Below, piece after piece: positions 190 through 55,710 of a stretch of 64,000 bases of DNA; positions within the stretch are counted from its first letter, which is position 1, and every line of letters begins with the position of its first letter. The stretch lies in the sequence record LT603033.1; one strand, 5' to 3'. Both the position numbers and the translations under genes were made by a program. The notes under the pieces were generated by a model. It was not told the DNA's origin and searched no databases. It saw only the letters and a program-made list of their open reading frames with translations.

Positions 190-600
190 ATGAGTTTAGA
201 TTTACACAATGAACTAAAATATTTTTTAGATTTGGACATATCAGAATTGAACCACCACGTCAATCATATGACTAGTACTGTATGGTGGTCTAATGATCAA
301 GACGACCCAATTATCCAACTAAGTGATGAATCGTCAATTATGCGATTTTATAAGATTAATTATAAAAAGAACATCAAGATCACATATGTACCATACAAAA
401 ACATACTACTAGTCGAAACACTTAATCCAAGTTCTTTATTAAAAATCACCGATTTAGATACATTACAAACAAGTGAATCTTTATTCCAACGTTCATTAGT
501 TGATGATCTTGGTGGTATTACTTTTGAAGATATATTACAATTGAAGAATATGTATAGTGAATTGTTGGAGATTAAAAACACTTTAGTAATGGGGAATTGA
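190..600 (+). CDS. FQ-motif family protein
   Basis: C-terminal TSESLFQRSLVDDLGG motif. Confidence 0.75.
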   Translation: MSLDLHNELKYFLDLDISELNHHVNHMTSTVWWSNDQDDPIIQLSDESSIMRFYKINYKKNIKITYVPYKNILLVETLNPSSLLKITDLDTLQTSESLFQRSLVDDLGGITFEDILQLKNMYSELLEIKNTLVMGN

Positions 601-601
601 T

Positions 602-1006
602 ATGGTAAGTTTACTAGATATTGATAATACCAGTTTAGTGCTGGTGAAAAAAGGTTTAATTCCAAATTCTAAAAAAATTGATTATGCTGTTATTGAAACA
701 AATATTGGAAATATCTGGTACGACTCTGAAAGGGATATTGTGTTTAGCTGTGTAGACAGTGATCGTTCTGAATGTTGTAGAGTCGGTCATGACGGACAAT
801 TTGTTTTTGAATTTCGTTATTGGAAGGACGCAAAATTTCACCAAGAACTGGTTGCTTTGTCAAATGAACTATATACAGAAGAATCGTTCTTCATGGCTAG
901 TACTATTAATGATTTTGGTTCAGTTACATTTGAGTACTATAAAAAAATATACGCACTATCCAGAGAAGTTATGAAAATTATCAGAACTGCTGAAGGTAAA
1001 GAATAA
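602..1006 (+). CDS. FQ-motif family protein
   Basis: TEESFFMASTINDFG; abuts previous ORF. Confidence 0.75.
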   Translation: MVSLLDIDNTSLVLVKKGLIPNSKKIDYAVIETNIGNIWYDSERDIVFSCVDSDRSECCRVGHDGQFVFEFRYWKDAKFHQELVALSNELYTEESFFMASTINDFGSVTFEYYKKIYALSREVMKIIRTAEGKE

Positions 1007-1007
1007 C

Positions 1008-1385
1008 ATGACTACTATATATGATATTTTGGGTGTTCTGAGTAGAAATATAGATGATGATTTTGTTATTGTTCAAGATACTAGAAATACATTTCAACTA
1101 CCAATAGGTTCACCAGATAGGTTAATTTTTAATAGATACTCAAATGAACTAACTTACATCCATGATGGGATTGCAATTGTATCAGTTTCTATAAACGACT
1201 ATACAATACGATATGTATATGACTTCAACGATTATTGTACAAGAATCCACAGTATTGATATTTCCGAAGAGGAACTATTCCAATTGTCATTGATTGAGAA
1301 AAATGTAATAGGAATTACAGAAATTGGTATTATTAAAAAAGCATTAAACTATACAAATATAAGAATTAATGGTGGGTGCAGATGA
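1008..1385 (+). CDS. FQ-motif family protein
   Basis: SEEELFQLSLIEKN; abuts previous ORF. Confidence 0.75.
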   Translation: MTTIYDILGVLSRNIDDDFVIVQDTRNTFQLPIGSPDRLIFNRYSNELTYIHDGIAIVSVSINDYTIRYVYDFNDYCTRIHSIDISEEELFQLSLIEKNVIGITEIGIIKKALNYTNIRINGGCR

Positions 1386-1837
1386 ATGTTGACGAAATAA
1401 AAAATCATTTTGAAATTGCAATGTCATGTGAATTTGACACACAACGTGTTCATGACCCGAAAGAACATATACGCATTTGTTGTGAATTGTCAGATGATTG
1501 TAATATTTTTATTGGAAAAACCTATGACATGATCGATCTTTCATGTATAGATCCATTGGAAAGAAAAACAAAATATTTATATCTGTACAACACAACATCA
1601 GATACGATTGCAATACAACTAATATCAACCACAACATCCCACAGTTATTATAACATAACTGAGGTTAGTAGTTTAACGTTAACCGAAGAAGGATTCTTTC
1701 AACAATCGCTTATTCGTGAAATTGGTGTTAGTTATGATGAGTTAAATGTATTAGTAGATTGTTTCGAAAAATTGAGTACTTTTGTATTATCCCTTTTTAA
1801 TATACAGTCGCAAAATCCAATGGTGGTGAAATGCTAA
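1382..1837 (+). CDS. FQ-motif family protein
   Basis: TEEGFFQQSLIREIG; ATG overlaps upstream stop (ATGA). Confidence 0.75.
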   Translation: MNVDEIKNHFEIAMSCEFDTQRVHDPKEHIRICCELSDDCNIFIGKTYDMIDLSCIDPLERKTKYLYLYNTTSDTIAIQLISTTTSHSYYNITEVSSLTLTEEGFFQQSLIREIGVSYDELNVLVDCFEKLSTFVLSLFNIQSQNPMVVKC

Positions 1838-2271
1838 ATCCAAGTAAATTTCTCCACTTACTTTCGATAACATCAATACCGGATCTTACCAGTGAAACTA
1901 ATGAATATCGTGAAGCTGGGGTGGTGTCTATGGAACTCGATACATTTGACCACAAATGCTATGTGACATATGACCCACCGCGTTATGGTAAAGAACATTC
2001 TTCTTTTATTTTTGTATTCGTATACACTGTATATGATAATACAACACTTGATGATGTTTGTATTGACACTTACGAAATTTGTGATAATATCATAACTGAT
2101 GACAACAATAACTCATTTGATATGTCACTATATAACACAGAAGAATCGTTGTTTCAACTTAGTACTGTTATTGATGCACCATCATTAGAAGATATAAAAC
2201 AATTTCAAGAACATCTTGACGCAGTTCGTGAGATGTTCTATAATCATTATCCAGAAGTAGAGTTCAATTAA
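1831..2271 (+). CDS. FQ-motif family protein
   Basis: TEESLFQLSTVIDAP. Confidence 0.75.
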   Translation: MLNPSKFLHLLSITSIPDLTSETNEYREAGVVSMELDTFDHKCYVTYDPPRYGKEHSSFIFVFVYTVYDNTTLDDVCIDTYEICDNIITDDNNNSFDMSLYNTEESLFQLSTVIDAPSLEDIKQFQEHLDAVREMFYNHYPEVEFN

Positions 2272-2285
2272 CTAAAGGTAATAAG

Positions 2286-2546
2286 ATGACTAAAGTAGTT
2301 CGTAAACGCCACATGATGAACATGGATGAATTTCGTACATTTGACAAATATCGTACTATGTTTCGTATGCTTTCACAGGGCCGTCCAATCGTCATTGTAA
2401 CAGAGAATTACATGTCACCTGAGATTATGTTTGGTAATTATGAAAAGGTCTTCATGTTGTACGTGAAGCGTGGATTACTTACAATCAAGACATTAGCTGA
2501 AGCAACTGATGAAGATATGGATGGTGATAATACCTTTACCATGTGA
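2286..2546 (+). CDS. hypothetical protein
   Basis: ATG ORF after AAGG RBS, co-directional. Confidence 0.7.
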   Translation: MTKVVRKRHMMNMDEFRTFDKYRTMFRMLSQGRPIVIVTENYMSPEIMFGNYEKVFMLYVKRGLLTIKTLAEATDEDMDGDNTFTM

Positions 2547-2554
2547 GGAAATAT

Positions 2555-4313: not shown

Positions 4314-4829
4314 ATGCCAATTCCTTATGTTAAAATTATTAATAATATTCTCGATTCATGGGAAGATGTTATTACTGGTATAAAGCAACCATCACCAGTA
4401 CATGCTTTATCTGGGAAACTTCAATTCAGAATGTCAAACCAAACTGAAACATTTAATAATCATGATATTTGCATTACATTAAAAACACCTATTAGTATTG
4501 TAATTAAAAAAAATAAAGATGATGAATTGACATTATCTATTGGTCGTGATAAAATCATTTTAAGTAATTTGTCTGAAGAAGAATTCTTTCAAAGAAGTAC
4601 TATTATCGATATGAAAGATTTCACATATGAATCATTGGTTGAACTCAATACACGTTTTAACGATATTCAGGAACGATTGCGACCAATTCTTCGTATCGAA
4701 GAAGAAGCCTGGATTGAAAGTATTAGGAAGATGCAAGAAATGTTGAAAGAAAATATTAACAATCTGGGTAAAGCTACAATGGAATTTGGTAAAACTTTTA
4801 AACTGAACTTTTCAAAGGATCGTAAATGA
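4314..4829 (+). CDS. FQ-motif family protein
   Basis: SEEEFFQRSTIIDMK; ATG after AGGTG. Confidence 0.75.
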   Translation: MPIPYVKIINNILDSWEDVITGIKQPSPVHALSGKLQFRMSNQTETFNNHDICITLKTPISIVIKKNKDDELTLSIGRDKIILSNLSEEEFFQRSTIIDMKDFTYESLVELNTRFNDIQERLRPILRIEEEAWIESIRKMQEMLKENINNLGKATMEFGKTFKLNFSKDRK

Positions 4830-5281
4830 AAATTGATAATTTGATTCATGTTTTAGGATCTTTACATAAAATATTATCACATCTACATGAGATAAAGAAA
4901 CTGGGATATAACATCTCAAATTCAATTGAAACTACATTTAAATATCAATCAATTACTGGTGATGGTTATTACATAATCGAATATACCTATGAAACCGATC
5001 CAGACTTCTATCCTCTTACGTTGAGAATTTATCCAACAAATCCGAGAGGAATTCACGACATATCATCAATTTCACTTGATCCAGATGGTGAAACGAGTAT
5101 TGAATACAATAATGATTCAAAACCAGAATTTTACATTGATGATATTAAAATGATGTTCAACGATGAATATGTGTTCCAGCAAAGTACTGTGCATGATGTT
5201 GGAAGTACTAATGGACAATTTTGGAATACATGTTATTATCATATGATTGAAATTTGTAAATTACTAAAAGGCGATGATTAA
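4826..5281 (+). CDS. FQ-motif family protein
   Basis: NDEYVFQQSTVHDVG. Confidence 0.75.
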   Translation: MKIDNLIHVLGSLHKILSHLHEIKKLGYNISNSIETTFKYQSITGDGYYIIEYTYETDPDFYPLTLRIYPTNPRGIHDISSISLDPDGETSIEYNNDSKPEFYIDDIKMMFNDEYVFQQSTVHDVGSTNGQFWNTCYYHMIEICKLLKGDD

Positions 5282-5664
5282 TGAAATACAGCATTGAAGT
5301 ACATTATACTACAGGGGACACTGAAAATTGTTATGACGTTCTTAATACAATTGATATTCAATGGTCTTCTAAAGAGGAAGCAGTTGCTGCTTTACAGTGC
5401 CTAAAAGAGCATTGGGTGTTTTATATGAAGCAAGATAATTGCTATACTAAAGAACACGAAACTATCGTTGAAAATGCTAAACAAAAAGAGTGGTTTGACC
5501 CAATATCACCAGAATATTCATTCTTGGTTAAAGTTGGCGATGTGACAGTTCCATTACGAACACCGTGGAACGGCTACTTTGAAACTCTTCATAATGCACG
5601 AGTTGTCGCTGTTGATAATCCTGAGCAAATCGATTTCGATTCATTGGACTGGAAAAAACTATGA
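5281..5664 (+). CDS. hypothetical protein
   Basis: Translationally coupled ATG ORF. Confidence 0.7.
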   Translation: MKYSIEVHYTTGDTENCYDVLNTIDIQWSSKEEAVAALQCLKEHWVFYMKQDNCYTKEHETIVENAKQKEWFDPISPEYSFLVKVGDVTVPLRTPWNGYFETLHNARVVAVDNPEQIDFDSLDWKKL

Positions 5665-6104
5665 CAGTACTGCACCAATTGAAGAAGGTTAAGCATCCAG
5701 TTGTATACGAGGATTGGAAACGACAGAAGTTGATGGGTGATTTTTATTTCCCAAAATCTAAAGTTCTTGCGAATTCAAGATGTACATATGTCACACATAA
5801 TGATAAAGATACAGTATTTGTTGAAATGGGTTTCAATCCATCAAATACAATGTTCAGTACTAACCAGACATTTTACAAATTTCATATCCAAAAAGATTCA
5901 TTTTCTATCATGATTTTAAAACTTTTAGTTGAAGATCTGCTATACCGTGGTGAACGTGTTCCTTTATCATTAGTGGATATTCCTTATGATAATTTAGAGG
6001 AAATGTACTTCCAACAGTTGACAGTACAAGAAAACTTTGGTATGATAGGACTTCAAGAGTTAGAGATGATTAAGCAAATTCGTGATATCTACTTTAAGGA
6101 GTAA
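5661..6104 (+). CDS. FQ-motif family protein
   Basis: LEEMYFQQLTVQENFG. Confidence 0.72.
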   Translation: MTVLHQLKKVKHPVVYEDWKRQKLMGDFYFPKSKVLANSRCTYVTHNDKDTVFVEMGFNPSNTMFSTNQTFYKFHIQKDSFSIMILKLLVEDLLYRGERVPLSLVDIPYDNLEEMYFQQLTVQENFGMIGLQELEMIKQIRDIYFKE

Positions 6105-10486: not shown

Positions 10487-10879
10487 ATGACTGAATCTGA
10501 ACTACGTGAAATGATAGATTTCATTTATGAAATGGTACAAGATAAAAATAACATCAATACAATTGCATCTGGTCCAAGACAAATTGGTAACCAAATAACA
10601 TATTCTTTGTCCTTATGGTTACACCCGTGCATTAAGGTTGATTGTTTGTATTTCCGTCCTGATATTGATGCTTATTATTTTGTCAATCATGATGCATTAA
10701 TGAAACCACATAATCGTCCAGTTGATGATAACTTTGTGACGCACCCATTTTACCTTGCTGATTCCGAAGAGGATGAGTTTCAAAAGAACACAACGTTAAG
10801 CCCAGGTGAAATTTGCATCCCTTACACACTAAAAGATAAAATGATTTACATCACAGAAGTTATGAAAACATGCTGGTAA
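10487..10879 (+). CDS. FQ-motif family protein (divergent)
   Basis: SEEDEFQKNTTL. Confidence 0.7.
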   Translation: MTESELREMIDFIYEMVQDKNNINTIASGPRQIGNQITYSLSLWLHPCIKVDCLYFRPDIDAYYFVNHDALMKPHNRPVDDNFVTHPFYLADSEEDEFQKNTTLSPGEICIPYTLKDKMIYITEVMKTCW

Positions 10880-11497: not shown

Positions 11498-11986
11498 ATG
11501 CCGATTCGTGGTGTCCCAGAACCATTAATGGAAGTTATTAAGCATGTTCGCATTGGAGATCGAGAAGTTAATCTTCGCCGTAATAACATTTATTACTTTA
11601 AAACTTCAGAAATGAGTTCTGTGCAGATTGTCATTGGTACATCTATTAAGATTACTCGTGTACTTGATGGTAGTACTGACTTCGTTGAATATAATGTACT
11701 TACTAATAAAGTAACGCATATATATAAATGGAGTGGGTATAAAACTATTAAGTATGAATTTGACTTAGCTAGAACTGAAGAAGAACGATTTATGCTGAGT
11801 ACTATCAATCCAGCAAACTATCCCGATCTTGATGCATTTTTGCTAATTTTAAAATTGTATAATGAAGCAAATCAGAAAGCTAAAGAGTATGATAGAATCA
11901 TGTATGAACGCCGAAAAGAACGTGCACAAAAAAGTTATGATCTGTATGATAGCCCATACGTGAAATATAGTAAGGGGTCGAAATGA
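11498..11986 (+). CDS. FQ-motif family protein
   Basis: TEEERFMLSTINP; GAGGA RBS. Confidence 0.72.
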   Translation: MPIRGVPEPLMEVIKHVRIGDREVNLRRNNIYYFKTSEMSSVQIVIGTSIKITRVLDGSTDFVEYNVLTNKVTHIYKWSGYKTIKYEFDLARTEEERFMLSTINPANYPDLDAFLLILKLYNEANQKAKEYDRIMYERRKERAQKSYDLYDSPYVKYSKGSK

Positions 11987-12387
11987 ATAAAGAAGTTCAA
12001 ATTATCATAACTCCACCTATACAAAGTCTGGATGTATCCATTAGTGATTTTTTGGAAAAATACTATGAATGGTTTAATGAAGATTCAGTAATTTATAACC
12101 ATTCATTACCAGATGGTTTCGTGGAGCTTATCGAATTAAATTCAAAATCACTATACTTCTGTGTTGAATACAATGATTATATGACAGATGAAGCTTATCG
12201 CTTTCGTTGTACATTGTATCCGAATTATTTTTCAATAGGTTATAAAGATTACCAGTACTGTACCACTAACTATAGTGTTGAGGAAGAATTTCAGTACAAT
12301 TTACTTTATCCTGATTTAGATTATACGATTGCAGTACTGTTGACTAAAATCATGGATTTTTATAAAGATAAATATAATGCAGCCTAA
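11983..12387 (+). CDS. FQ-motif family protein (divergent)
   Basis: VEEEFQYNLLYPDL. Confidence 0.7.
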   Translation: MNKEVQIIITPPIQSLDVSISDFLEKYYEWFNEDSVIYNHSLPDGFVELIELNSKSLYFCVEYNDYMTDEAYRFRCTLYPNYFSIGYKDYQYCTTNYSVEEEFQYNLLYPDLDYTIAVLLTKIMDFYKDKYNAA

Positions 12388-12750: not shown

Positions 12751-12816
12751 TTGTCCATTGCAATGCTTTCTTTACAGAAGAATAAATGAAACACTTAATT
12801 GAACTGGATACATAAA
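12751..12816 (+). pseudogene. relic 3' end of the 13119..13334 gene
   Basis: Near-identical to 13270-13334 but with in-frame TAA. Confidence 0.55.
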
Positions 12817-12993
12817 ATGACACACAAAGAATGGATAGAGTCACTAAAATATAAACATGATCATTTTGGATTTGGTATACGCCAAGGCCATTATGATGTT
12901 TTGAACGATAAAAAAACGTTCGAATCCTTGGTTTTGGACGAAGATTCCAACCACTGGTTCATCTACGAGCTTGCTATTAGAGATAAAAAATAG
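12817..12993 (+). CDS. MTHEEW-family microprotein
   Basis: MTHKEW...WFIYELAIRDKK. Confidence 0.7.
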   Translation: MTHKEWIESLKYKHDHFGFGIRQGHYDVLNDKKTFESLVLDEDSNHWFIYELAIRDKK

Positions 12994-12998: not shown

Positions 12999-13334
<336 letters not shown>

Positions 13335-13335
13335 A

Positions 13336-13518
13336 ATGACACACGAAGAATGGATGTCCAAACAGCATAAAGAACATGACTGCTTTGGGAATGGCATTCG
13401 TCAGGTACATTATGATATATTAAGAGATGAAAATCTTTTCAGGTCATATGTTTTGGATACCAGAAAACCCTGGTTTATATGCGAACTGGCATTTAGAAAG
13501 TCAAATAATCAAAACTAA
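13336..13518 (+). CDS. MTHEEW-family microprotein
   Basis: MTHEEW...PWFICELAFRK. Confidence 0.7.
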   Translation: MTHEEWMSKQHKEHDCFGNGIRQVHYDILRDENLFRSYVLDTRKPWFICELAFRKSNNQN

Positions 13519-13534
13519 ACAAGGAATACAAAAA

Positions 13535-13753
13535 ATGGAAACAACTTTATTAGAAGTTATTCAATCATTAAAACCTGAAGATGAGGTTCAAGTACTACTA
13601 CATGGTTATCGTGTAAAAGGTACTGTGGTTTTAGTCAATGATACAACATTGGTTATTACAGAAACAAACCCATATGATAGTAATCAACTTGCCAATATCC
13701 ATATCGATATCACTGGAATTATTGGTGTCGGTGTATCTAAAACACTTGCATAA
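13535..13753 (+). CDS. small beta-rich hypothetical protein
   Basis: AAGGA RBS; start corrected from track 13427. Confidence 0.65.
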   Translation: METTLLEVIQSLKPEDEVQVLLHGYRVKGTVVLVNDTTLVITETNPYDSNQLANIHIDITGIIGVGVSKTLA

Positions 13754-13786
13754 ATCATTAATTCATTATATAATGGGACATAACAT

Positions 13787-13902
<116 letters not shown>

Positions 13903-13906
13903 AATA

Positions 13907-13983
13907 CGGGGTATAGCACAATTGGATAGTGCAAGAGAATTCTAATCTCTAGGTTGGGGGTTCAAGTCCCTCTACCTCGGCCA
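13907..13983 (+). tRNA. tRNA-Arg(TCT)
   Basis: CGGGGTA/TACCTCG acceptor, stem AGAGA/TCTCT, loop ATTCTAA, CCA. Confidence 0.9.
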
Positions 13984-14006
13984 ATTTTAATTAAAGGTTA
14001 AAAACC

Positions 14007-14341: not shown

Positions 14342-14755
<414 letters not shown>

Positions 14756-15214: not shown

Positions 15215-15979
<765 letters not shown>

Positions 15980-15992: not shown

Positions 15993-16810
<818 letters not shown>

Positions 16811-17164: not shown

Positions 17165-17590
17165 ATGACATACAACATTGTTAAAATGGTGAACTATGTA
17201 TTAAAAAACAACGCATGGTCACTGCATGATGTACAATTAGAAGATATTGGTGAAGTTAGAGTATTTTGCTATGATCCAGATTTGAATCAAACCACAGATT
17301 TGAGTAAATGTTTTAATATTTTTCTTGGTTATGAATTCAATAATCATTTTTATTCATTTGATGTGTATTTTGAAAAAGTTATATTCAGAAGTTATGAATG
17401 TGATAATGAAGATTATGATTATGATGATGAATCAATTGAATTGAATGTTAACGATATTGATACTGAAGAAAAATTCTTCCAGTACTGCCTCCTTAACGAC
17501 ACATTAGGATTAACATTTGAGGACATTAAAGCTATACTTAAAGTTCAAAAGTTGATTCCAGAAGAGGTACTAAATCCATTAAATGACTAG
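17165..17590 (+). CDS. FQ-motif family protein
   Basis: TEEKFFQYCLLNDTLGLTFEDI. Confidence 0.75.
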   Translation: MTYNIVKMVNYVLKNNAWSLHDVQLEDIGEVRVFCYDPDLNQTTDLSKCFNIFLGYEFNNHFYSFDVYFEKVIFRSYECDNEDYDYDDESIELNVNDIDTEEKFFQYCLLNDTLGLTFEDIKAILKVQKLIPEEVLNPLND

Positions 17591-17948
17591 TCTAATAGTA
17601 CGTATAATGCAAGATGTTTGTAATAACCTTTATACAGGCAATTTTGACGATCCGAACATAAAAATATTATGTTATGATGGTTTTACAATGGTACATCCAT
17701 CCTATTCAAATAATATCTACGTAGCATATACAGGTGAAAATCTATTGTATCAATTTGATATATATAGTACAATGACAAAGATAATTTTGGATGCCTCTAA
17801 ACCAGCAATCTTTATTGCTTCTCATGATTACCATTACACTGAAGAATCACTATTTCAGTACTCAATGATTAATGACATTGGTGGGTTGACATTGGATGAG
17901 GTTAATGCTATACTAGCTGTCTCACGTTTGGTTAAAACCCACAATTAG
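17583..17948 (+). CDS. FQ-motif family protein
   Basis: TEESLFQYSMINDIGGLTLDEV. Confidence 0.75.
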   Translation: MTSLIVRIMQDVCNNLYTGNFDDPNIKILCYDGFTMVHPSYSNNIYVAYTGENLLYQFDIYSTMTKIILDASKPAIFIASHDYHYTEESLFQYSMINDIGGLTLDEVNAILAVSRLVKTHN

Positions 17949-18658: not shown

Positions 18659-19087
18659 GTGAATGCAATGAGTTATTTGTTTACTTTAATTGATAAGTAT
18701 GTTGACATTGTATACCGTCAAGTTTGTAGTGATACGTTTGAAACAAAAAACCCAATTAGAGATGGCATTTTTGATGTTGTCGTTGGATCATTTTTGAATG
18801 GATACACCGAGACATTATACAACAGTAATAATATTTTTATTTCAGTTCAATCCAGACATACATCAGACTATGCTGTTAGCATTGATATTTGGGAAAATAA
18901 TATAGAAATAGATATAACGGAACATACTAACATTCATGTTGATGATACATTTAATCAATTAACTGAAGAAATGTACTTGCAGTTGAATTTTGTACATAAT
19001 CTTACAAATATCAGTTATGATACATTAAGGAAAATATGTTTTCTTAGTGGGGTGATCCGTAGTAATATGAGTAAGGATGGGAAGTGA
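18659..19087 (+). CDS. FQ-motif family protein (divergent)
   Basis: TEEMYLQLNFVHNL. Confidence 0.7.
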   Translation: MNAMSYLFTLIDKYVDIVYRQVCSDTFETKNPIRDGIFDVVVGSFLNGYTETLYNSNNIFISVQSRHTSDYAVSIDIWENNIEIDITEHTNIHVDDTFNQLTEEMYLQLNFVHNLTNISYDTLRKICFLSGVIRSNMSKDGK

Positions 19088-19088
19088 A

Positions 19089-19505
19089 ATGTTAAAAATT
19101 CCACCTAAGTCGTTAACACATCTTATTGAATGTGGTGTAATATTTTCCGAAGGTGATACCTCATCATACACATTGGTCGATGAGCCTTATAATTTTTCAT
19201 ACCAATCTTATAAAAATAATTCTAAAATTTCTTGTAGATATGCTGAAAACATATTAATAGATGTTTCGTTACATAATGTTCCGAAATTTTACATTGATAT
19301 CTTTGGTGATTCTTTGACAATTCGAACATATGATTATTTTATTAATAAAGACCTCTTGAGTCTTCCAATTGAACATGATACTATAGATTCAGAGATGTTC
19401 TTTCAACTATCAACAGTTTACGATTTACAGGGTTTAACTGTTGAGCAGTTGAATGGAATATTTGAGATTTCACGAAACATACGAAGCAGGAATAAAAATG
19501 TCTAA
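19089..19505 (+). CDS. FQ-motif family protein
   Basis: DSEMFFQLSTVYDLQGLT. Confidence 0.75.
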   Translation: MLKIPPKSLTHLIECGVIFSEGDTSSYTLVDEPYNFSYQSYKNNSKISCRYAENILIDVSLHNVPKFYIDIFGDSLTIRTYDYFINKDLLSLPIEHDTIDSEMFFQLSTVYDLQGLTVEQLNGIFEISRNIRSRNKNV

Positions 19506-19908
19506 TATTTTAAATGAAAAAACAGTTGATGTTGTTATTGGTGTTCTTAACACCGCAACTTCATTTCAGAAGAAACACAGTGTTGTATACTTTGGTGAAG
19601 ATTGTTGGCTGAACTATACTAATAATTCGTTTATAATTCGTGTAGAGGCTGATGATATTGGATTAACCGTTCAGGTAGGATGTGCCAAAACTGACAAACA
19701 AATCACTGTCATTGTTGATAAACTTACGTCTTCTTTTTATGATAGTATAGATGATTGTGAACACTATAGTTCAACATTTTATGATACAGAAGAAGAACAT
19801 TTTATGGAAAGTACTGTTCAAGAGTTAGCTATTCCATATAAGCTAATGAAAGCAGTGAGTGATTTAATTTTAAAATATAAAAAAATAGGAGTTACTAATG
19901 CAATTTAA
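19498..19908 (+). CDS. FQ-motif family protein
   Basis: TEEEHFMESTVQEL; AGGA RBS. Confidence 0.72.
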   Translation: MSNILNEKTVDVVIGVLNTATSFQKKHSVVYFGEDCWLNYTNNSFIIRVEADDIGLTVQVGCAKTDKQITVIVDKLTSSFYDSIDDCEHYSSTFYDTEEEHFMESTVQELAIPYKLMKAVSDLILKYKKIGVTNAI

Positions 19909-33813: not shown

Positions 33814-34014
33814 ATGTTTACTTTATATCTCGCAGTAGTTCTCACCAATGGTGAAATCACTCGTACTATTGGTGAAGGTGTATATAAAACACCAGACCAG
33901 TGCTACTCTGCCACTCATTGGCCTCGCGATAGTGGGGATGAAACTCGCACTGAATTCAAATGCATGAAAGTAAAAGGTGATTTTGTTAACCTTAAGGTTA
34001 TCGAGGCGAAATAA
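33814..34014 (+). CDS. small two-Cys hypothetical protein
   Basis: Start corrected to ATG after AAGG. Confidence 0.62.
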   Translation: MFTLYLAVVLTNGEITRTIGEGVYKTPDQCYSATHWPRDSGDETRTEFKCMKVKGDFVNLKVIEAK

Positions 34015-34532
34015 TGGATATTAATGAGTTGTTGAAATTAGTGTTTAATCGTGAACGCCGCGATACAAGACCAATTGAATATCAAGATGTGATACGCATT
34101 GAAACTGATTTCTGTTATGGTAAAACAACTCATGACCTTTTGAATCTCTCTGGAAAACGCTATGCTGATGTTTGTTTTTCAGAGAGAAGTGATGGTTCAG
34201 AAATAACGAGTACTGATATTGTTTGTTACGCACGCAGTGCTGATAAATCTTATGAAATAGAACTTATATATTCCCCTAGTTCTAAAACAAATCATCACCG
34301 CCATATTTTATATGATGTTTACACACCACCTGGTATTGCTGAATATTTTGTTATTGATTATAGTACTGAAGAAAATGTGTTTCAACAAAGTTTGATTCAT
34401 AACTTTGAGGTGAATGATCCATTAGTACCAAAGTTGTTCAAACTACTTGACACCATAGATGTTGATTTTGAATTTGTTATGTGCATTAGAACTTCTTTAT
34501 TCAATGAATTCATGGAACTTTTTAATATATGA
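34014..34532 (+). CDS. FQ-motif family protein
   Basis: TEENVFQQSLIHNF. Confidence 0.75.
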   Translation: MDINELLKLVFNRERRDTRPIEYQDVIRIETDFCYGKTTHDLLNLSGKRYADVCFSERSDGSEITSTDIVCYARSADKSYEIELIYSPSSKTNHHRHILYDVYTPPGIAEYFVIDYSTEENVFQQSLIHNFEVNDPLVPKLFKLLDTIDVDFEFVMCIRTSLFNEFMELFNI

Positions 34533-39568: not shown

Positions 39569-40141
39569 ATGAATCGTAAAGGTCGTTTTAAAGTATCAAA
39601 AAAGAACAAAAGTTCTAGGTTTAAACCTATTGTTTTAACAGTTAAATCTAACAAAGAATTAACTGCACTTAGTAAAAAGATAATTTCATCTAAGATTGAA
39701 GTATCATACGTAAATTCATTAAAATATATGAATGTCAAACCACTGGACCAACTCATTTCACTTATATTTGAACGTAATGATTTTGAGATATCAGTAGATG
39801 ATTATAGAGCCTATAATGCTGGTTTCATTAATGTTACTTGTAATAAAAAACTAACTGAGTTGGAAAATTTGTCATGTATAATAAATCTAGATAAAGGTGT
39901 TGTGAAGTACCATTTTGTACATTTCACTAATATCAATAATGGAATGGGTGTACAATCCAGACCTATAGTGCCTACGTGTGATGTTACTAAATTAGCAAAG
40001 CTCAATGATGAAGAATATTTTCAAGAAAGCATTGTAACTGAGCATTTAGATGATATAATAGCTACTTACAAAGAATGCATATGGGTGTTGAATGCTATAA
40101 AACCTAAATTGTGTTTAATGAATATTGTTCGTGATTTATGA
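39569..40141 (+). CDS. FQ-motif family protein
   Basis: DEEYFQESIVTEHL; GAGGA RBS. Confidence 0.72.
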   Translation: MNRKGRFKVSKKNKSSRFKPIVLTVKSNKELTALSKKIISSKIEVSYVNSLKYMNVKPLDQLISLIFERNDFEISVDDYRAYNAGFINVTCNKKLTELENLSCIINLDKGVVKYHFVHFTNINNGMGVQSRPIVPTCDVTKLAKLNDEEYFQESIVTEHLDDIIATYKECIWVLNAIKPKLCLMNIVRDL

Positions 40142-45037: not shown

Positions 45038-45376
45038 ATGGAACAATATTTTGAATTAATAAACAAAGTATCATTTTATGTAGTATCTTTGGTTTGGGTG
45101 TATTATATGTTTTGCTACATTATTGCATTCTTCCGATACACTACTTTATATGAACGTATCTACTATGATGCCCCAATTTCATTCTTGATGTTTTGTGCAT
45201 GTACGTGGGGAATATTAGAAGTACTGATATGTGGGTATAGTACTGATGAATTAAATCTGGTATCGGTCTTGACTGGGTTTTCATTTGTTGTTATGATAGC
45301 TGCCGTTCCAGTATGGTTGTTCTTTGGACTAGTTCATCGCATTGATATATGGCGTTCTAATATCCCTGAAAAGTAA
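45038..45376 (+). CDS. small membrane protein family member
   Basis: About 3 TM; ends WRSNIPEK. Confidence 0.72.
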   Translation: MEQYFELINKVSFYVVSLVWVYYMFCYIIAFFRYTTLYERIYYDAPISFLMFCACTWGILEVLICGYSTDELNLVSVLTGFSFVVMIAAVPVWLFFGLVHRIDIWRSNIPEK

Positions 45377-45385
45377 GGATTTGTA

Positions 45386-45727
45386 ATGATTTATTACACT
45401 AACATGTTTGCCTATGCTGTTGCTTGCATTTACATTGTTTACTTCTTATTCGGTGGAGTACTGTGCTTCTTTAAGTACAAAACGTTGTTCAACCGAATGT
45501 ACCCAAATCATCCAATTGTAGTTGTACTTTTGATTCTTTCAGTTTCTCAAATAATCGTTGAAACTACAATGGGTATCAGTAGTGTACATTATAGTTTTGG
45601 TACTATAGTAATTATTACTATGCTTATTGCATACATTTTAGTACTTGGATATGGTATCTTTGGTAATATTGGTATGAAAATGTATCATCGAATTAAAACA
45701 TTACGTGATAATCTACCGGAGCGTTGA
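45386..45727 (+). CDS. small membrane protein family member
   Basis: About 3 TM; ends LRDNLPER. Confidence 0.72.
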   Translation: MIYYTNMFAYAVACIYIVYFLFGGVLCFFKYKTLFNRMYPNHPIVVVLLILSVSQIIVETTMGISSVHYSFGTIVIITMLIAYILVLGYGIFGNIGMKMYHRIKTLRDNLPER

Positions 45728-45728
45728 T

Positions 45729-46073
45729 ATGTATAATTTGAACCTAATCTCATATATTATAACAACACTGTTTACATTCTATGCCTTTGTTGGTATAATC
45801 CTACTGTACTTTAAATTTTATAAAGTGTTTAACCGTTTCTATCCTTCAATGGAGAATGAGTTTTTCTTTGTGTTGTACGTAGGTTACACGTTAATGGCTA
45901 CATGTTTCACTGTAGCCGATGGTGTCATCGGCATTAAAACTGATTCCCCAAATGGTAGTACGCTGGTTGCATTTATTCTTACCGGATTCCTTGCAACTTA
46001 TATTGCCTTCATTACAACATGGTCAGTTGTTGAATTTCTCTTGCGACTACGAAAGAATATGCCGAATAGATAG
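45729..46073 (+). CDS. small membrane protein family member
   Basis: About 3 TM; ends LRKNMPNR. Confidence 0.72.
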   Translation: MYNLNLISYIITTLFTFYAFVGIILLYFKFYKVFNRFYPSMENEFFFVLYVGYTLMATCFTVADGVIGIKTDSPNGSTLVAFILTGFLATYIAFITTWSVVEFLLRLRKNMPNR

Positions 46074-49547: not shown

Positions 49548-49787
49548 ATGAAACTATCTTTTATACGTTTAGCAGAATTCTTCGGTACTGATATAATTAC
49601 ATTACAACAAATTGCAGACAATACTTCATTAAGTACACAAGAAGTACTTGACTTGGATGTAATTAAGTGTGATAATACTTCCATCGATTACAAAGAAGGT
49701 CTTGTCGAAAAAGATAAGATTCAGGCTAAGATTAATGGTGCTGGACGGGTTCAGTACTGGAAAGGAGTTTTAAGTAATGCCAGCTAA
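49548..49787 (+). CDS. hypothetical protein
   Basis: GAGG RBS. Confidence 0.7.
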   Translation: MKLSFIRLAEFFGTDIITLQQIADNTSLSTQEVLDLDVIKCDNTSIDYKEGLVEKDKIQAKINGAGRVQYWKGVLSNAS

Positions 49788-51663
49788 ATTAACCCCTAAA
49801 CAAGCAAAAGAAAAATTCAACAATAAAGTATTAGAACATAACGTTCCAATTGAAGCTGATTATAGTAAGTATGAAAATGCCAAATTAAAAAACATCCAAG
49901 TAGTTTGCAATGATGTATTAAAACACAAATCAGGCATATCACAAGTATATCTTATGGATCACGCAAACCTCACACACCCATCTAAAAAATTTGGTTGTCC
50001 TGAATGTGAAGACTGGTATAATGGTCATGCTAAAAGTTTAGATATTTTAATTGTTAGGGAAAGAATTAATTCTTGGATTAGTACTTATGGTGGCATAATT
50101 GATACAGTTAGTGGTGAAGTTGAAGTTTATAAAAATAATTCAACAAAAATACCATATATTTGTAAAAATGGAACTAAAAAAACGCTTACTATTTCTACAC
50201 TGGGTGATGAAATCGGTTGTAATTGTTCTAAATGTAAATCTGAATTAATATCAGAAATCGAAGATAACAATGAATATACATCCATGACTACTGATGATGA
50301 TTGTGTTACAATTTCCCATTTTATATTTGGGGATGATGTTGCATTCTCGTGGATTTCACCATTGGAAATGAAAAAACATGGTTACGGTCTTGCCGAAAAA
50401 ATGAAAGAAAAAGCATTGTCGGTTGGTAAAAATATTATTGGATATGCAATATCATCTCTTAGTGAATGGAAAAATGAAAAAACTCCTGTAATAACGGAAC
50501 ACGAAGGAGTATTATATCGTATTTCCAGAGCATCATATTTGATCAATAATAATATAGTACATAGACCACATTATACAAAAAATAATTTTTTATATTATTT
50601 TTACAAATGTTCACCTAACAATCAACTTATTACACCAATCCTAATACCTGATGATGTTGGTACAAAAAAGAAAATTAAAGTATGTTATAAATCATGTGGG
50701 TGTGAATACGATATATCTGTGGACGTTATAATGAACAGAAATTTAAAAACTTGTGGAAACTGTAAAAATATAGATACTAAAACATTTATAGAAAAGTGCT
50801 TGGAGTTCAAATCAAGTGGAGAATATATCTATGATAGAGTAAACTATATAAATCAAAGTACACCTGTAACTATAGTTCATAAAATTTACGGAGAATTCAA
50901 AAGTACACCACAAAATCACTTAACACATTTAAAAAACAGTTTGAAATATGATACAGCTAACTTTAAAATAAAAAATCTAACTCAATTTAAAATTAAAGCA
51001 AATGAAGTTCATAATAACTTATATAATTATGATAAAGTTGATTATGTAAATTCTTCAACGAAAGTATTAATAACTCATCCAGTGTATGGAGACTTTTGGC
51101 AAACTCCAAATGGGCATTTGGCAGGTAAAGGACACCCGAAAGTCAAAGGTGGTGTTCCTTATACATGTGATGAATTTAAAATTAAAGCAAATGAAGTTCA
51201 TAATAACTTATATAATTATGATAAAGTTGATTATGTAAATTCTTCAACGAAAGTATTAATAACTCATCCAGTGTATGGAGACTTTTGGCAAACTCCAGCA
51301 AGTCACCTTTGTGGGTCTGGTCATCCACTTGCGGCTGGTCATTCTCAGCAATATGCATATATTCATAATATTTTGGATGGTGATTTATCTGTAGCATTGA
51401 AATATGGTATTGAAAAGCAGAAAGGTAAGAGGGTTATGCAGCAAAATAAAAAATCATTATTTAAAATTGAATCGTTACATACGTATTTTTTCACATCTGT
51501 GTTTGAGTGTAAGGAAGCTGAAAAAGAATGTAAAAAACTATTTGGTAAAGGCGTTTTAACTAAACAAGAAATGCCAGATGGTTATACTGAAACTACTACA
51601 CCAAACAACATAGATAAAATTATTGCAATCTATGAAAAATGGGGTGGGGTGAAAAAAAACTAA
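49777..51663 (+). CDS. homing-endonuclease-like protein with DUF723-type repeats and C-terminal GIY-YIG/T5orf172-like domain
   Basis: Repeats F..KA.EVH...Y.YDKVDY.NS.TKV.I.HP..G.F.QTP..HL; Cys pairs; C-terminal YAY..KYGI..R...DGYTE. Confidence 0.62.
   Translation: MPAKLTPKQAKEKFNNKVLEHNVPIEADYSKYENAKLKNIQVVCNDVLKHKSGISQVYLMDHANLTHPSKKFGCPECEDWYNGHAKSLDILIVRERINSWISTYGGIIDTVSGEVEVYKNNSTKIPYICKNGTKKTLTISTLGDEIGCNCSKCKSELISEIEDNNEYTSMTTDDDCVTISHFIFGDDVAFSWISPLEMKKHGYGLAEKMKEKALSVGKNIIGYAISSLSEWKNEKTPVITEHEGVLYRISRASYLINNNIVHRPHYTKNNFLYYFYKCSPNNQLITPILIPDDVGTKKKIKVCYKSCGCEYDISVDVIMNRNLKTCGNCKNIDTKTFIEKCLEFKSSGEYIYDRVNYINQSTPVTIVHKIYGEFKSTPQNHLTHLKNSLKYDTANFKIKNLTQFKIKANEVHNNLYNYDKVDYVNSSTKVLITHPVYGDFWQTPNGHLAGKGHPKVKGGVPYTCDEFKIKANEVHNNLYNYDKVDYVNSSTKVLITHPVYGDFWQTPASHLCGSGHPLAAGHSQQYAYIHNILDGDLSVALKYGIEKQKGKRVMQQNKKSLFKIESLHTYFFTSVFECKEAEKECKKLFGKGVLTKQEMPDGYTETTTPNNIDKIIAIYEKWGGVKKN
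50984..51297 (+). repeat. 125-bp perfect direct repeat, period 189 bp
   Basis: 50984-51108 identical to 51173-51297, in frame. Confidence 0.92.
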
Positions 51664-52566: not shown

Positions 52567-52905
52567 ATGCTTGAGTTTTTTAATTCAGATACAATGATTA
52601 GTATTACTTTGATTTATCTGTTTGGTTTTTTCTTTTATCATGCACTGGTTGTAGTACTGTGGTATTTTAAAAAGAAAATTGTTTTTAAACTGTATCCAGT
52701 AAGGAATTCATCACTAGTTCTTTACACACTAGTTCAAGGTTTGTTTGCAATTGTTGGTCTTATGGCACACTTAATTTATTGTGCCAATCCTCACTTGAAC
52801 TCAATCTCACAATATATTGTATTCTTTGGGTTGTTCATTTGGTTAGTTGTATACTTAATCCATCTCATTATTCATGGTAGAGATAAAATTCGCGGAGACT
52901 TCTAA
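52567..52905 (+). CDS. small membrane protein family member
   Basis: About 3 TM; WYFKK..F..YP; basic C-terminus. Confidence 0.72.
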   Translation: MLEFFNSDTMISITLIYLFGFFFYHALVVVLWYFKKKIVFKLYPVRNSSLVLYTLVQGLFAIVGLMAHLIYCANPHLNSISQYIVFFGLFIWLVVYLIHLIIHGRDKIRGDF

Positions 52906-53252
52906 TGTTTGAAGCTTATCTTGAGTTTTTAAAGAGTAGTTCTGTTGCACATTCAATTGCAGGGATTATTCTAACAGGTTATGTAACATTTTGGGTAGTT
53001 ATGTTTCTAGGATGGTATTTTAAACGACAATTCTATAAGCGTAATGGTGAAGATTTTATGAATTCTTTCATTAATCAATCGTTGTTTGCATCAACATTGA
53101 TAGCATGTATTGTAGCAACACTCACAGGAAAGGTACTGCCAGCATTCTCCGCAGTTTACGGTACATTGGGTATGATATGTGTAGTTTTTTACTTGACCAT
53201 TAAAATTTGTTGTGTTATGATTGAACTTCGAAATAAGATACCGGAGGAATGA
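52905..53252 (+). CDS. small membrane protein family member
   Basis: GWYFKR.FY; ends LRNKIPEE. Confidence 0.72.
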   Translation: MFEAYLEFLKSSSVAHSIAGIILTGYVTFWVVMFLGWYFKRQFYKRNGEDFMNSFINQSLFASTLIACIVATLTGKVLPAFSAVYGTLGMICVVFYLTIKICCVMIELRNKIPEE

Positions 53253-53587
53253 TGGAGTACTTTATTGATTTACTGCCGTGGTATATGAAAGTTAGTACTT
53301 TGTACTATATTATTAGTGCTGGATTCTACTTTCTGATGTGGTTCTTTAAACGACCAATTTCAGTATTCATCGCTGATAACATGCTGCAATTAAAATTACA
53401 CGCATGGTTTGGTATGGCGATGATTATGCCTATTATTCACTACTCAATGATTAGTAGAGGTTTCCGTTCTAATGGTGAACCAATTGTATTAGTATTCTAT
53501 TGGGGTTCAACTATTGCATATGTAAGTTTGTTGTTGTTCCCAGTCGTTCATAAATTACGTGCTAAAGTCCCTGATGCGAGGTACTAA
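53249..53587 (+). CDS. small membrane protein family member
   Basis: WFFKRP; ends LRAKVPDARY. Confidence 0.72.
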   Translation: MMEYFIDLLPWYMKVSTLYYIISAGFYFLMWFFKRPISVFIADNMLQLKLHAWFGMAMIMPIIHYSMISRGFRSNGEPIVLVFYWGSTIAYVSLLLFPVVHKLRAKVPDARY

Positions 53588-53901
53588 TGGATATCGTAAC
53601 ATTGATTTACACGTTGTATTCATTCTATTTCATTATGTGTTGGGTTGGATTTTTATTTGTACTCAAGATGTTTGATTATGTTGAAAAACAGATAAAAGAA
53701 TTTTGTATTCCTTTTATCGGATCAACCATTATTAGTGTTTCTTGTGTGTATTTTTTGGTTTTTGAACCACCAGATAACACTGCAATGATTGACTTGATGT
53801 TACTACCAACAACTGTTACTTTTTTATGTAGTCTGATGCCGCCGATTAGCCGTGGACTAACAGAATTTAGACGCAACCAAAAGCGTAAACGAGGGATGTA
53901 A
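53587..53901 (+). CDS. small membrane protein family member
   Basis: About 3 TM; basic tail. Confidence 0.7.
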   Translation: MDIVTLIYTLYSFYFIMCWVGFLFVLKMFDYVEKQIKEFCIPFIGSTIISVSCVYFLVFEPPDNTAMIDLMLLPTTVTFLCSLMPPISRGLTEFRRNQKRKRGM

Positions 53902-54269
53902 TGGAAATTGCTCTTATTATCTTAACTGCTATGCTGTTTATTAGTACTGTGGTTATAATTGGTAAATTCTTTTGTGTATCATTTTTAGAAACGGTATACG
54001 ATGAAATTGCTGATGATTATGAATTACAAGCCGGATTTTTCATTACGTATTGGCTTAGTTTATTTTGTCTAGTCATTGCTTGGATTTTACATATCTTTAA
54101 ATGGGGTATGGTAGACGGTGATCCTATTATGGCAATTATTGTTCTAGTGTTTGGTATCCTTGGTGGTGCAGTGCATAATCTAATGGTTATCTGGCAAACT
54201 GTTCAATATGTTTTGGTTCCCTATTTCGAAAAGATGCACAGTACAATTAAAAAACGTAAACGAGGTTAG
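53901..54269 (+). CDS. small membrane protein family member
   Basis: IGKFF...VYD; basic tail. Confidence 0.72.
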   Translation: MEIALIILTAMLFISTVVIIGKFFCVSFLETVYDEIADDYELQAGFFITYWLSLFCLVIAWILHIFKWGMVDGDPIMAIIVLVFGILGGAVHNLMVIWQTVQYVLVPYFEKMHSTIKKRKRG

Positions 54270-54270
54270 T

Positions 54271-54633
54271 ATGAACGGGATAGAATTATCTTTCGTTGGT
54301 CAATTACTAGTAATGGCGTATACATTTATCTTCTCACTGAATGCATTCGTGTGCATTGGGAAGTACTTCCATAAGCGACCATTATCAAATATATATGATG
54401 TAATCCAAAAGAGATATAGTCCAGCATATACTGTGTTGGGTACAGTATTCAATTTTGGTTTTATTGTATTAATAATTGGACTGTTCACATCCTCTTTGAA
54501 TACAATAACCTTCGGTCTTATGATATGTTCATTGGTATTAGCCGTAATTATATGTTGTTTAGTACTGCACCTTGTGGTACTATTGTATATAAAGATCTCT
54601 GAAATCCACCAACGTTTGGGTATGAGGAAATAA
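54271..54633 (+). CDS. small membrane protein family member
   Basis: IGKYFHKRP...IYD; start corrected to ATG after GAGG. Confidence 0.72.
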   Translation: MNGIELSFVGQLLVMAYTFIFSLNAFVCIGKYFHKRPLSNIYDVIQKRYSPAYTVLGTVFNFGFIVLIIGLFTSSLNTITFGLMICSLVLAVIICCLVLHLVVLLYIKISEIHQRLGMRK

Positions 54634-54634
54634 T

Positions 54635-55006
54635 ATGAGTTACCGTGAGATATTTTCCATTATTTCAATTATTATGTTCAGTACTGGAACACTGGTATGG
54701 TTATTATACTTCTTCTGTATTAATCCAGTGTATAATATGTTATGTAATATTAAATCAAGTGCCGGATATATCACTTTTATGGTCTTTATGGGATATTATT
54801 GTCTAAGCATTTTAGGTGTTGTTTTGGTTGTTATATTTGATGTGGGACCAAATAGTGATGGTATGGAAATACATGAATTAATAACCATGTTTGGATGTAT
54901 GATACCAACAGCACTACTGTTTGTAGCTACTGGTAGTGGATTGATAAAATTATATAATTATTTAAAATCCATTCATAATTCCATTCATAATAAGCGTATG
55001 TCATAA
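54635..55006 (+). CDS. small membrane protein family member
   Basis: YFFCINPVYN; basic tail. Confidence 0.72.
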   Translation: MSYREIFSIISIIMFSTGTLVWLLYFFCINPVYNMLCNIKSSAGYITFMVFMGYYCLSILGVVLVVIFDVGPNSDGMEIHELITMFGCMIPTALLFVATGSGLIKLYNYLKSIHNSIHNKRMS

Positions 55007-55008
55007 TA

Positions 55009-55038
55009 AAAATCCAGTACTATCAAGTACTGGATTAA
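55009..55038. terminator. probable terminator hairpin
   Basis: AATCCAGTAC-TATCAA-GTACTGGATT. Confidence 0.6.
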
Positions 55039-55047
55039 TAAGGAGTT

Positions 55048-55710
55048 ATGATGAAAACAAAATTAGGTTTGTTTTATAAAAATTATTTCGTTAAACAGCG
55101 TAAATTTATAAAAAAATATTTCTCTGGTGAGAAGTCTAGTCCTATAATTTTTAAAAGACCAAGTTATAATACTTACTTAGCTGATGCTAAACAGTCTAAG
55201 AAATTTATTACTCTTTTAAATAAAAACAAAATTAAAGCTTCTTATGTTGAAACGAGAAGAAACTCATCAATAACTCCTGGTGATTTTATTGAGTACGGAT
55301 GTTTCAATATTAAGTATAATGATAATACATACTTTATGGATATTGATTGTAATACATCCAATCTTTTTAACATTGTAGTAAATCCATTAAAACAATATAA
55401 TGTTTATGGTGATTCTATTATCAAATTAATCAAAAACAAAGATGGCTTTGATTTTGAAATAAATGTTTTAGATGATAATTTTGACGAAGTACCCGTAAAC
55501 CCTGAAATCTGTGATATTTTAAACAGTTTAAAAGGTAGTACCTACAATATATCATCTGATTTAATGTTTCAGTACTCATTAATCCATAAAGATATTGAAA
55601 AGTATATTGAATGTTCCAAAATTTTGAATTATCTTTACGATGAATTTAAAAAGAGTTCTAAAATAACCGCATACACTTTGTACAATATTCCTAAAATGGT
55701 GAATCTTTGA
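55048..55710 (+). CDS. FQ-motif family protein (long, divergent)
   Basis: SSDLMFQYSLIHKD; AAGGAG RBS. Confidence 0.68.
   Translation: MMKTKLGLFYKNYFVKQRKFIKKYFSGEKSSPIIFKRPSYNTYLADAKQSKKFITLLNKNKIKASYVETRRNSSITPGDFIEYGCFNIKYNDNTYFMDIDCNTSNLFNIVVNPLKQYNVYGDSIIKLIKNKDGFDFEINVLDDNFDEVPVNPEICDILNSLKGSTYNISSDLMFQYSLIHKDIEKYIECSKILNYLYDEFKKSSKITAYTLYNIPKMVNL

Follow-up and report, generated by a model that had tools for sequence, protein, structure and literature searches.

The DNA analysed in this study is the start (bases 1-64000) of the record LT603033.1, Escherichia phage vB_Eco_slurp01. This phage is a myovirus of the genus Asteriusvirus (PBECO4/121Q group) with a genome of 348 kb. The 64,000-nucleotide stretch that was examined, called the window here, is identical in sequence to these bases of the record. 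Its G+C content is 32-36% and its plus strand carries nearly all genes of the first 55 kb. A set of small proteins encoded in this window share a short sequence motif towards their C-terminus, and the record annotates every one of these open reading frames (ORFs) as 'hypothetical protein'. We find strong support here that the proteins constitute one family with a single architecture, that the motif lies within the fold of the member for which a confident model was obtained, and that tandem duplication has brought the family to about 60 copies in slurp01. As to their function, we give a little better than an even chance to the reading that this is one large paralogous family of diversified intracellular binders for host takeover or counter-defence.

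The motif and its statistical reality

An earlier note on this DNA, made from the letters alone, had pointed to about 21 divergent proteins with a common motif. The motif reads [T/S]-E-E-x-x-F-[Q/M]-x-S-[T/L]-[V/I/L]-x-[D/E/N] and is followed, about six residues further on, by an amphipathic helix. Column shares were computed over 109 non-redundant relatives. The acidic start is T in 72% (S in 17%), then E in 94% and E in 98%; the middle consists of a variable position, an aromatic residue or L, F (98%), Q (85%, with M in 15%) and a second variable position; and the end has S (92%), T or L (95%), V, I or L (99%), a variable position and D, E or N (95%). Downstream there is a weaker [T/S]-x-E-[D/E] box together with an i/i+3/i+4 hydrophobic pattern.

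The motif and profile tests were done on a set of 245 window ORFs, 151 on the plus and 94 on the minus strand. A loose regular expression for the motif matched 14 of the plus-strand ORFs and none of those on the minus strand, while 500 shuffles of the same window proteins gave a mean of 0.14 matches and a maximum of 2. The earlier note had considered that the alignment might be no better than one of shuffled AT-rich proteins; chance or an artefact of AT-rich composition is ruled out by the shuffles and by the zero on the minus strand.

Two profile hidden Markov models (HMMs) were used, one for the motif region (the module profile) and one for the full-length family, and both separated 16 strong members cleanly (Table 1). 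When the full-length profile was rebuilt without each member and its orthologue cluster, it still recovered every strong member with an expect value (E) of 9e-7 to 5e-16, above every non-member ORF and always within the top 16 of the 245 ORFs. Four further ORFs (39569, 11983, 15215 and 10487, named here by their start position) have degenerate motifs and score at or near noise with the module profile alone; with the full-length profile, in which none of the four was included, they rank first to fourth among the window's non-seed ORFs (E 9e-4 to 0.075), and their alignments extend over nearly the whole protein. With ORF 55048 as a doubtful case, the count of about 21 was a fair one. That all of these proteins carry the strict pattern was too strong a statement, however, since the four divergent ORFs and ORF 55048 meet it only in degenerate form. 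The placement of the motif near the C-terminus holds for most: in 19 of the 21 ORFs it begins at residue 84-119, which is 33-53 residues from the end, but in two members with C-terminal extensions this distance is 68 and 83 residues.

A single domain rather than a portable module

To the sharing of a constant module by variable bodies, the earlier note had attached the proposal of a docking or targeting tag. An AlphaFold2 model of ORF 17583, built from a 37-sequence family alignment, argues otherwise. The model has a predicted local distance difference test score (pLDDT) of 88.9 and a predicted template modelling score of 0.83, with helices at residues 4-15, 87-96 (the motif) and 104-114 and strands at 26-32, 44-51, 54-61, 64-68 and 76-79. 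According to this model, the motif is predicted to supply the N-cap and body of helix 2 of a compact alpha-beta5-alpha-alpha domain, in which the five strands would form an antiparallel meander between the N-terminal helix and the two C-terminal helices, and the [T/S]-x-E-[D/E] box would start helix 3. The pLDDT is 84-94 across the motif stretch, and as the motif helix lies within the compact modelled domain it would therefore not be a tail. A helical wheel drawn from the sequence suggests that two variable motif positions fall on one face, with the conserved ones elsewhere.

Structure comparison with Foldseek against BFVD, a collection of predicted models, is consistent with this architecture. 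Asteriusvirus proteins that are 18-33% identical matched the 17583 model along its length with template modelling (TM) scores of 0.54-0.77, and proteins of Pectobacterium phage CBB and of PBECO4 that are about 15% identical matched with a TM score of about 0.5. Weaker matches came from Yersinia phage fHe-Yen9-04, Erwinia phage pEa_SNUABM_47 and Klebsiella phage RaK2 (probability 0.72-0.98), and one from Cronobacter phage GAP32 had a probability of 0.23.

At the sequence level, the divergent window members and RaK2 proteins were detected better by the full-length profile than by the module profile; one RaK2 protein went from E 2e-5 with the module to 8e-13 with the full-length profile. In a leave-one-out test with N-terminal regions only, 11 of the 16 strong members ranked in the top 10 of 128, and in profile-profile comparison real N-termini outscored reversed ones family-wide (Wilcoxon p=0.008). 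A search with the motif profile, which had been suggested as a check, did find relatives, all of them small proteins with the layout of the family. Among 1.84 billion proteins, 76 representatives matched at E<1e-3; they are 62-185 residues long, with the motif at about residue 80-135 in nearly all (in two fragments it is nearer the front) and with alignments that mostly cover the whole profile. No larger or other architecture carrying the module was found among these 1.84 billion representative proteins.

These results bear directly on the alternative that the motif is a portable docking or targeting tag, carried by unrelated bodies and bringing many proteins to one hub, be it a host machine or a phage complex. 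The 146 relatives fall into 73 BLAST clusters, so that the N-terminal regions, which the earlier note could not align by eye, are indeed diverse, and they resist pairwise alignment even by profile; the motif is far better conserved than the rest of the protein, with E and F each reaching 98%; its polar residues (E-E, Q, S and D) are conserved beyond what packing of the fold would need; and non-synonymous divergence (dN) is lower in the C-terminal than in the N-terminal part. All this speaks for a tag. Against it stand the near-constant size and motif position with the module never seen elsewhere, the modelled location of the motif helix in a compact domain and not in a linker or tail, the predicted structures that match the model over most of its length at 15-30% identity, and the signal that the full-length profile carries beyond the module. 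We consider the tag unlikely. The N-terminal helix and the sheet have diverged past pairwise detection and the motif alone stays recognisable. The possibility that the motif is the core of a known domain extending across the whole protein had also been raised, and this is largely what we find, except that the domain is not a known one.

Database and literature status

The conclusion that the proteins belong to no named family is borne out by the searches. Pfam gave no domain above cut-off in any of the 20 members scanned, NCBIfam and PADLOC had no family match to members, and a profile search of PDB sequences had a best E of 1.8. Foldseek of the 17583 model against PDB returned nothing significant (best E 0.16, TM no higher than 0.33); GFO/IDH/MocA C-domains, p32 and others made up these PDB matches, all at E>=0.16, and were rejected as fold relatives. 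A MazG-like EExxE metal motif was discarded on spacing and residues, which do not match, and membership of the SUKH or immunity proteins on the lack of a Pfam match.

In PHROGs, groups 24941, 24510, 17453 and 21500 and at least 16 more consist of family members, all labelled 'unknown function'. Every window member has an end-to-end match to a PHROG of its own, and weak cross-matches centre on the motif; the database thus splits the family into many groups, and the superfamily link is absent from it. The family is not described in the genome papers on CBB, RaK2, Sharanji and fEgEco12, nor in a jumbo-phage survey, and the RaK2 paper reports that about 10% of the gene products of that phage are paralogues (PMC3622015). 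Within the literature and databases searched, the family, its fold, its size and the invariant helix are undescribed, while lineage-specific expansion itself is a known phenomenon.

Family size and distribution

The family has about three times as many members as the earlier note had seen; the note overlooked one member cut by the start of the window (3-134) and about 40 outside the window; the window itself holds 21-22. When 1,235 six-frame ORFs of at least 50 residues from the whole of LT603033.1 were compared with the family profile, 50 matched at E<=1e-3, 60 at E<=0.01 and 66 at E<=0.1. All matches are on the plus strand and none is among the minus-strand ORFs, which provides a built-in control for false positives. 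The 60 ORFs at E<=0.01, which exclude 10487 and 55048, are all 101-229 residues long from start codon to stop, and they make up about 10% of the 595 annotated genes, with about 28 kb of coding sequence or about 8% of the genome. Fifteen are located at 0-20 kb, two at 30-40 kb and one at 73 kb (73,344); 34 lie at 100-132 kb, nearly all of them in a contiguous array of about 29 kb (102,883-131,775); three are at 143-149 kb (142,853-144,117 region), four at 183-198 kb (183,573; 196,396-197,806) and one at 346.6 kb (346,587), just upstream of the window.

Related phages have sets of their own. Stretches of 40 kb contain about 20 members in EJP2 and 19 in fEgEco12; stretches of 49 kb contain at least 14 in Klebsiella phage RaK2 and at least 5 in Pectobacterium phage CBB; and a metagenomic relative has at least 11 within 20 kb. 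A scan of IMG/VR with a degenerate DNA pattern, which matches only 2 of the window's own members, detected true arrays on no contigs other than low-GC ones of 109-378 kb; three pattern matches on GC-rich contigs had no profile match and were dismissed as chance. A word-indexed protein search returned only proteins of Asteriusvirus-like contigs. As far as searched, the family is thus confined to RaK2-like jumbo myoviruses of Enterobacterales, namely Asteriusvirus, Alcyoneusvirus, Mimasvirus and uncultured relatives.

Table 1. Members of the family and sigma-70-type promoter sites in the window
Feature	Position	Strand	Length (amino acids)	Basis and remarks
Member truncated by window start, orthologue of phAPEC6 gp132c	3..134	+	C-terminal 43 codons	Motif in translation
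Sigma-70-type promoter, before first gene block	131..159	+		11/12; consensus match only
Strong member	190..600	+	136	E 1.6e-13; PHROG 24941, cross-matches to PHROGs of other members
Strong member	602..1006	+	134	E 3.6e-13; PHROG 24510
Strong member	1008..1385	+	125	E 3.8e-8; PHROG 36084
Strong member	1382..1837	+	151	E 8.1e-14; PHROG 30841
Strong member	1831..2271	+	146	E 3.7e-12; most acidic (net charge -21, pI 4.1)
Strong member	4314..4829	+	171	E 2.6e-10; extra C-terminal helical tail of about 45 residues
Strong member	4826..5281	+	151	E 1.4e-9
Strong member	5661..6104	+	147	E 1.3e-10
Probable divergent member	10487..10879	+	130	Full-length E 0.075, fourth-best non-seed; degenerate motif
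Strong member	11498..11986	+	162	E 5.2e-9; basic C-terminal extension, pI 9.3
Probable divergent member	11983..12387	+	134	Full-length E 3e-3, residues 20-130; motif one residue shorter
Sigma-70-type promoter, before ORF 14402	14343..14370	+		11/12; consensus match only
Strong member	14402..14755	+	117	E 1.3e-14
Probable divergent member	15215..15604	+	129	Full-length E 1e-2
Sigma-70-type promoter, before tRNA-Thr and ORFs 17165 and 17583	16755..16782	+		12/12; consensus match only
Strong member	17165..17590	+	141	E 4.6e-14
Strong member, structure-modelled	17583..17948	+	121	E 4.6e-16
Strong member	18668..19087	+	139	E 8.2e-10; L replaces near-invariant F
Strong member	19089..19505	+	138	E 8.5e-15; matches PHROG of 17583 over residues 32-137
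Strong member	19498..19908	+	136	E 6.6e-14
Strong member, apart from arrays	34014..34532	+	172	E 9.1e-7
Probable divergent member	39569..40141	+	190	Full-length E 9e-4, best non-seed; basic, N-terminal extension
Doubtful member	55048..55710	+	220	Module E 0.01-0.04, full-length E 0.68; basic

The E values that Table 1 gives for strong members come from profiles built without the orthologue cluster of the member concerned. Some of the assignments in the table call for comment. The phAPEC6 ORF that corresponds to the truncated first member extends further upstream, and the family profile matches its fEgEco12 counterpart at E 4e-10. ORF 4314 would encode 180 residues if it were read from the first start, at 4287; its motif starts 83 residues from the C-terminus. 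For ORF 15215 the record annotates a longer ORF from 15062, whereas PHROG and phAPEC6 gene lengths favour the start at 15215; its orthologue in EJP2, which is 60% identical, has a more canonical motif and a module E of 8e-3. ORF 39569 scores E 1e-3 to 1e-2 with the module profile, and there is a faint colinear likeness between it and ORF 55048 (26% identity, E 0.07). For ORF 10487 the module profile is at noise level, and the protein has its own PHROG without cross-matches.

Genomic setting and protein properties

The tandem blocks described by the earlier note are real, and within them genes abut or overlap by a few bases. It had placed the blocks behind early-type promoters, and the region is indeed dense in near-consensus sites of the host sigma-70 type (defined as at least 11 of 12 consensus positions, by sequence match): 31 were found on the plus strand of the window against 1 on the minus strand, with 2.4 expected, and some stand directly before family blocks (Table 1). 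The strongest terminator-like hairpin of the first 20 kb (18621-18645, plus strand; 11 pairs followed by a T run) lies between a promoter-like site matching 10 of 12 positions (18590-18619) and the family block at 18668-19908.

The phage encodes its own sigma factor (28430-29395). The sequence at 27911-28408 of the window has an orthologue in fEgEco12 that is annotated as HslV-like, with no Pfam match here. A phage ClpP is encoded at 156,958-157,653 of LT603033.1 and is 66-70% identical in RaK2, CBB and Erwinia and Yersinia relatives; the slurp01 record also annotates ClpA, and this ClpP/ClpA/HslV-like protease set is conserved across the clade.

The members are mostly acidic proteins. Their median isoelectric point (pI) in the window is 4.7 vs 6.9 for other ORFs of similar size, and genome-wide 78% of the members are below pI 5.5. 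Inspection of the translations by eye showed nothing hydrophobic that looked like a signal peptide or a membrane span; no predictor was applied.

The data strongly support a location of the members outside the virion. None of the 62 virion proteins of phAPEC6 identified by mass spectrometry, in one study of limited depth (PMC7247149), is an orthologue from either array (gp083c-gp132c and gp404c-gp466c). Packaging had been among the functions entertained in the earlier note, in the form that the motif would be a packaging or capsid-targeting signal and the proteins would be injected with the DNA. Jumbo phages do package many proteins, and phAPEC6 has an inner body (PMC7247149); however, with no orthologue of either array in that proteome, and with the genes situated in promoter-rich, early-like regions away from the structural genes, we regard virion cargo as barely credible.

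Family genes are interleaved with transfer RNA (tRNA) genes in slurp01, RaK2 and CBB. In the window, seven tRNA genes are interspersed among the members at 13021-17148 (plus strand), among them a tRNA-Ser with the unusual anticodon ACT at 15634-15725. Two related ORFs of about 65 residues (12799-12993 and 13318-13518, plus strand) flank tRNA-Gly and one small ORF and indicate a local duplication. It could be argued from the interleaving, and from the fact that all five CBB members found are inside the tRNA cluster, that the proteins cooperate with the tRNAs of the phage, for instance by shielding or modulating tRNA or ribosome functions. Yet the largest array (103-132 kb) has no annotated tRNA genes, both kinds of gene may simply share an early region, nothing in sequence or fold resembled RNA-binding domains, and acidic proteins bind RNA poorly. 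Such a role therefore seems very improbable.

Sequence evolution

In 17 orthologous family pairs between slurp01 and fEgEco12, the median ratio of non-synonymous to synonymous divergence (dN/dS) was 0.28, compared with 0.12 for 48 neighbour genes (p=8e-4). The ratio ranged from 0.03 to 0.53 and was below 1 in all pairs, and dN was higher in the N-terminal than in the C-terminal part in 13 of the 17 pairs (p=0.001). Purifying selection thus acts on the members, but they change at about double the rate of the neighbouring genes, and most rapidly in the N-terminal part. When slurp01 is compared with EJP2, which is more distant, few members keep recognisable orthologues, and much of the whole region has turned over too.

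An array left behind by tandem duplication, with little function and a motif kept for the sake of folding, would also be expected to show extreme N-terminal divergence, repertoires that differ strongly among related phages (such as the few EJP2 members with a detectable slurp01 orthologue) and a dN/dS above that of the neighbours. We nevertheless find it quite improbable that the genes are decaying or selfish duplicates: all 60 matches are ORFs that run from a start codon to a stop, the dN/dS values are those of purifying selection, the family has persisted in three genera with sigma factors no more than 35-44% identical, and it occupies a considerable part (about 8%) of the genome.

Proposed function

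According to the reading that we favour, the members, as free-standing and mostly acidic single-domain proteins of 100-230 residues, would act inside the infected cell as a diversified set that binds or inhibits host proteins. Target specificity would come from the variable sheet and the N-terminal face; the invariant helical hairpin would keep the fold together and might also offer a common acidic and polar contact (E-E, Q, S and D). By analogy, binding for host takeover or counter-defence is probably their function.

Several points weigh against this reading. The functional part of it is drawn from likeness to other proteins that are small, acidic, encoded in early regions, fast-evolving and expanded. 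Sigma-70-type sites are common on the plus strand over much of the genome (107 vs 10 on the minus strand) and hence not specific to the family, and with dN/dS below 1 throughout, positive selection is not shown. As for the fold, the structural check of the N-terminal regions came out well for ORF 17583, with a confident model and its BFVD matches, but failed for ORF 34014, the most isolated strong member, whose model had a pLDDT of only 41 and was unusable; with a single confident model, a common fold for all members is extrapolated, and the signal for one shared fold, as predicted from this model, is weakly positive family-wide. The BFVD models are themselves predictions, and the proteins that they represent were taken as paralogues, their identities not being confirmed. 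When N-terminal alignments were compared with hhalign, the median probability over 66 pairs was 0.2%, equal to that of reversed decoys, and therefore pairwise N-terminal homology cannot be claimed; the exception is ORF 17165, the sole member with an N-terminus detectably like that of its neighbour, ORF 17583 (probability 71%). Finally, the near-invariance of E-E, Q and S exceeds the needs of helix capping, so that a shared functional site is possible.

This last point leads to a variant in which the invariant hairpin, with its E-E, Q, S and D, would be a shared docking surface that plugs about 60 differently specific binders into one hub. The clade's protease set (ClpP and ClpA, with the HslV-like protein in fEgEco12) is a candidate for such a hub, and ClpP is conserved wherever the family was found, but many other genes co-occur in the same way. 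The predicted packing of the motif within the domain weighs against the idea, and we regard it as a long shot. If it were true, the phage would possess an adaptor library that sends host proteins to a common fate, a counterpart of the poxvirus ankyrin/F-box families.

Comparison with known systems

There is a precedent for a lineage-specific expansion of this kind in Bacillus phage G, with about 35 copies of a zinc ribbon (Iyer et al.). As with the proteins described here, this is the massive expansion of one small domain in a single jumbo phage without an assigned function; however, the domain is another one, and the slurp01 family lacks zinc ligands and is larger (about 60 vs about 35 copies). 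Tandem, fast-diverging paralogues in variable genome regions are also found in eukaryotic viruses, as the multigene families (MGF) of African swine fever virus and the ankyrin/PRANC (F-box-like) proteins of poxviruses, and PRANC proteins have a short conserved helical motif at the C-terminus, behind an N-terminal part that varies. The likeness of these to the slurp01 family is one of logic only, that is tandem arrays, a variable N-terminus and a conserved C-terminal helix. In contrast to PRANC, the slurp01 helix is predicted to lie inside a compact domain and is not a separate docking box, and no sequence or fold relationship was found. More generally, portable docking motifs such as PRANC/F-box-like boxes and SspB-type tails differ from the slurp01 motif, which was found on one architecture among the 1.84 billion representatives and is predicted with high confidence to lie inside the folded domain.

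Ocr, Arn and Ugi are small acidic phage inhibitors that mimic DNA. The members resemble them in being small and acidic, but there is no sequence match and membership is unsupported. The p32/gC1qBP (MAM33-like) proteins are likewise acidic and have an antiparallel sheet flanked by terminal helices; with a Foldseek E of 0.5, a TM score of 0.25 and no sequence match, membership of this group is not supported.

Other features of the window

A second paralogous set consists of ten multi-pass membrane ORFs of 104-141 residues in two tandem arrays (45038-46073 and 52567-55006, plus strand). They are weakly related to one another, and several have a basic R-x-x-[IVLM]-P-[EDN] tail. An ORF of 628 residues at 49777-51663 (plus strand) has Cys-rich segments and two near-identical internal direct repeats of about 45 residues, with no Pfam match. 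On the minus strand, a run of RCC1-like repeat ORFs of about 300-400 residues occupies 55691-63979 and continues to position 71,425 of LT603033.1; Pfam's RCC1-like domain matches them at E 1e-15, which is under the curated cut-off. By position and size only, these ORFs appear to correspond to phAPEC6 gp003-gp010, gp549 and gp551, which are listed as virion proteins (PMC7247149).

Significance

A single orphan domain, whose copies are not connected with each other in any database, accounts for about one-tenth of the genes of a 348-kb coliphage and for about 8% of its DNA, and the same family fills arrays in Klebsiella and Pectobacterium relatives. In jumbo phages the majority of genes are 'hypothetical' (83% in phAPEC6). 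Merging some 60 hypothetical genes per genome into one family with one predicted fold is therefore a gain for annotation, and it narrows the matter to a single tractable question, namely what this scaffold binds. Should the proteins be merely structural or redundant, the family would still be a striking expansion of a phage gene family; if instead they form a diversified repertoire for interaction with the host, it would rank with the largest multigene families of bacterial viruses known so far, and would be a source of many small protein binders.

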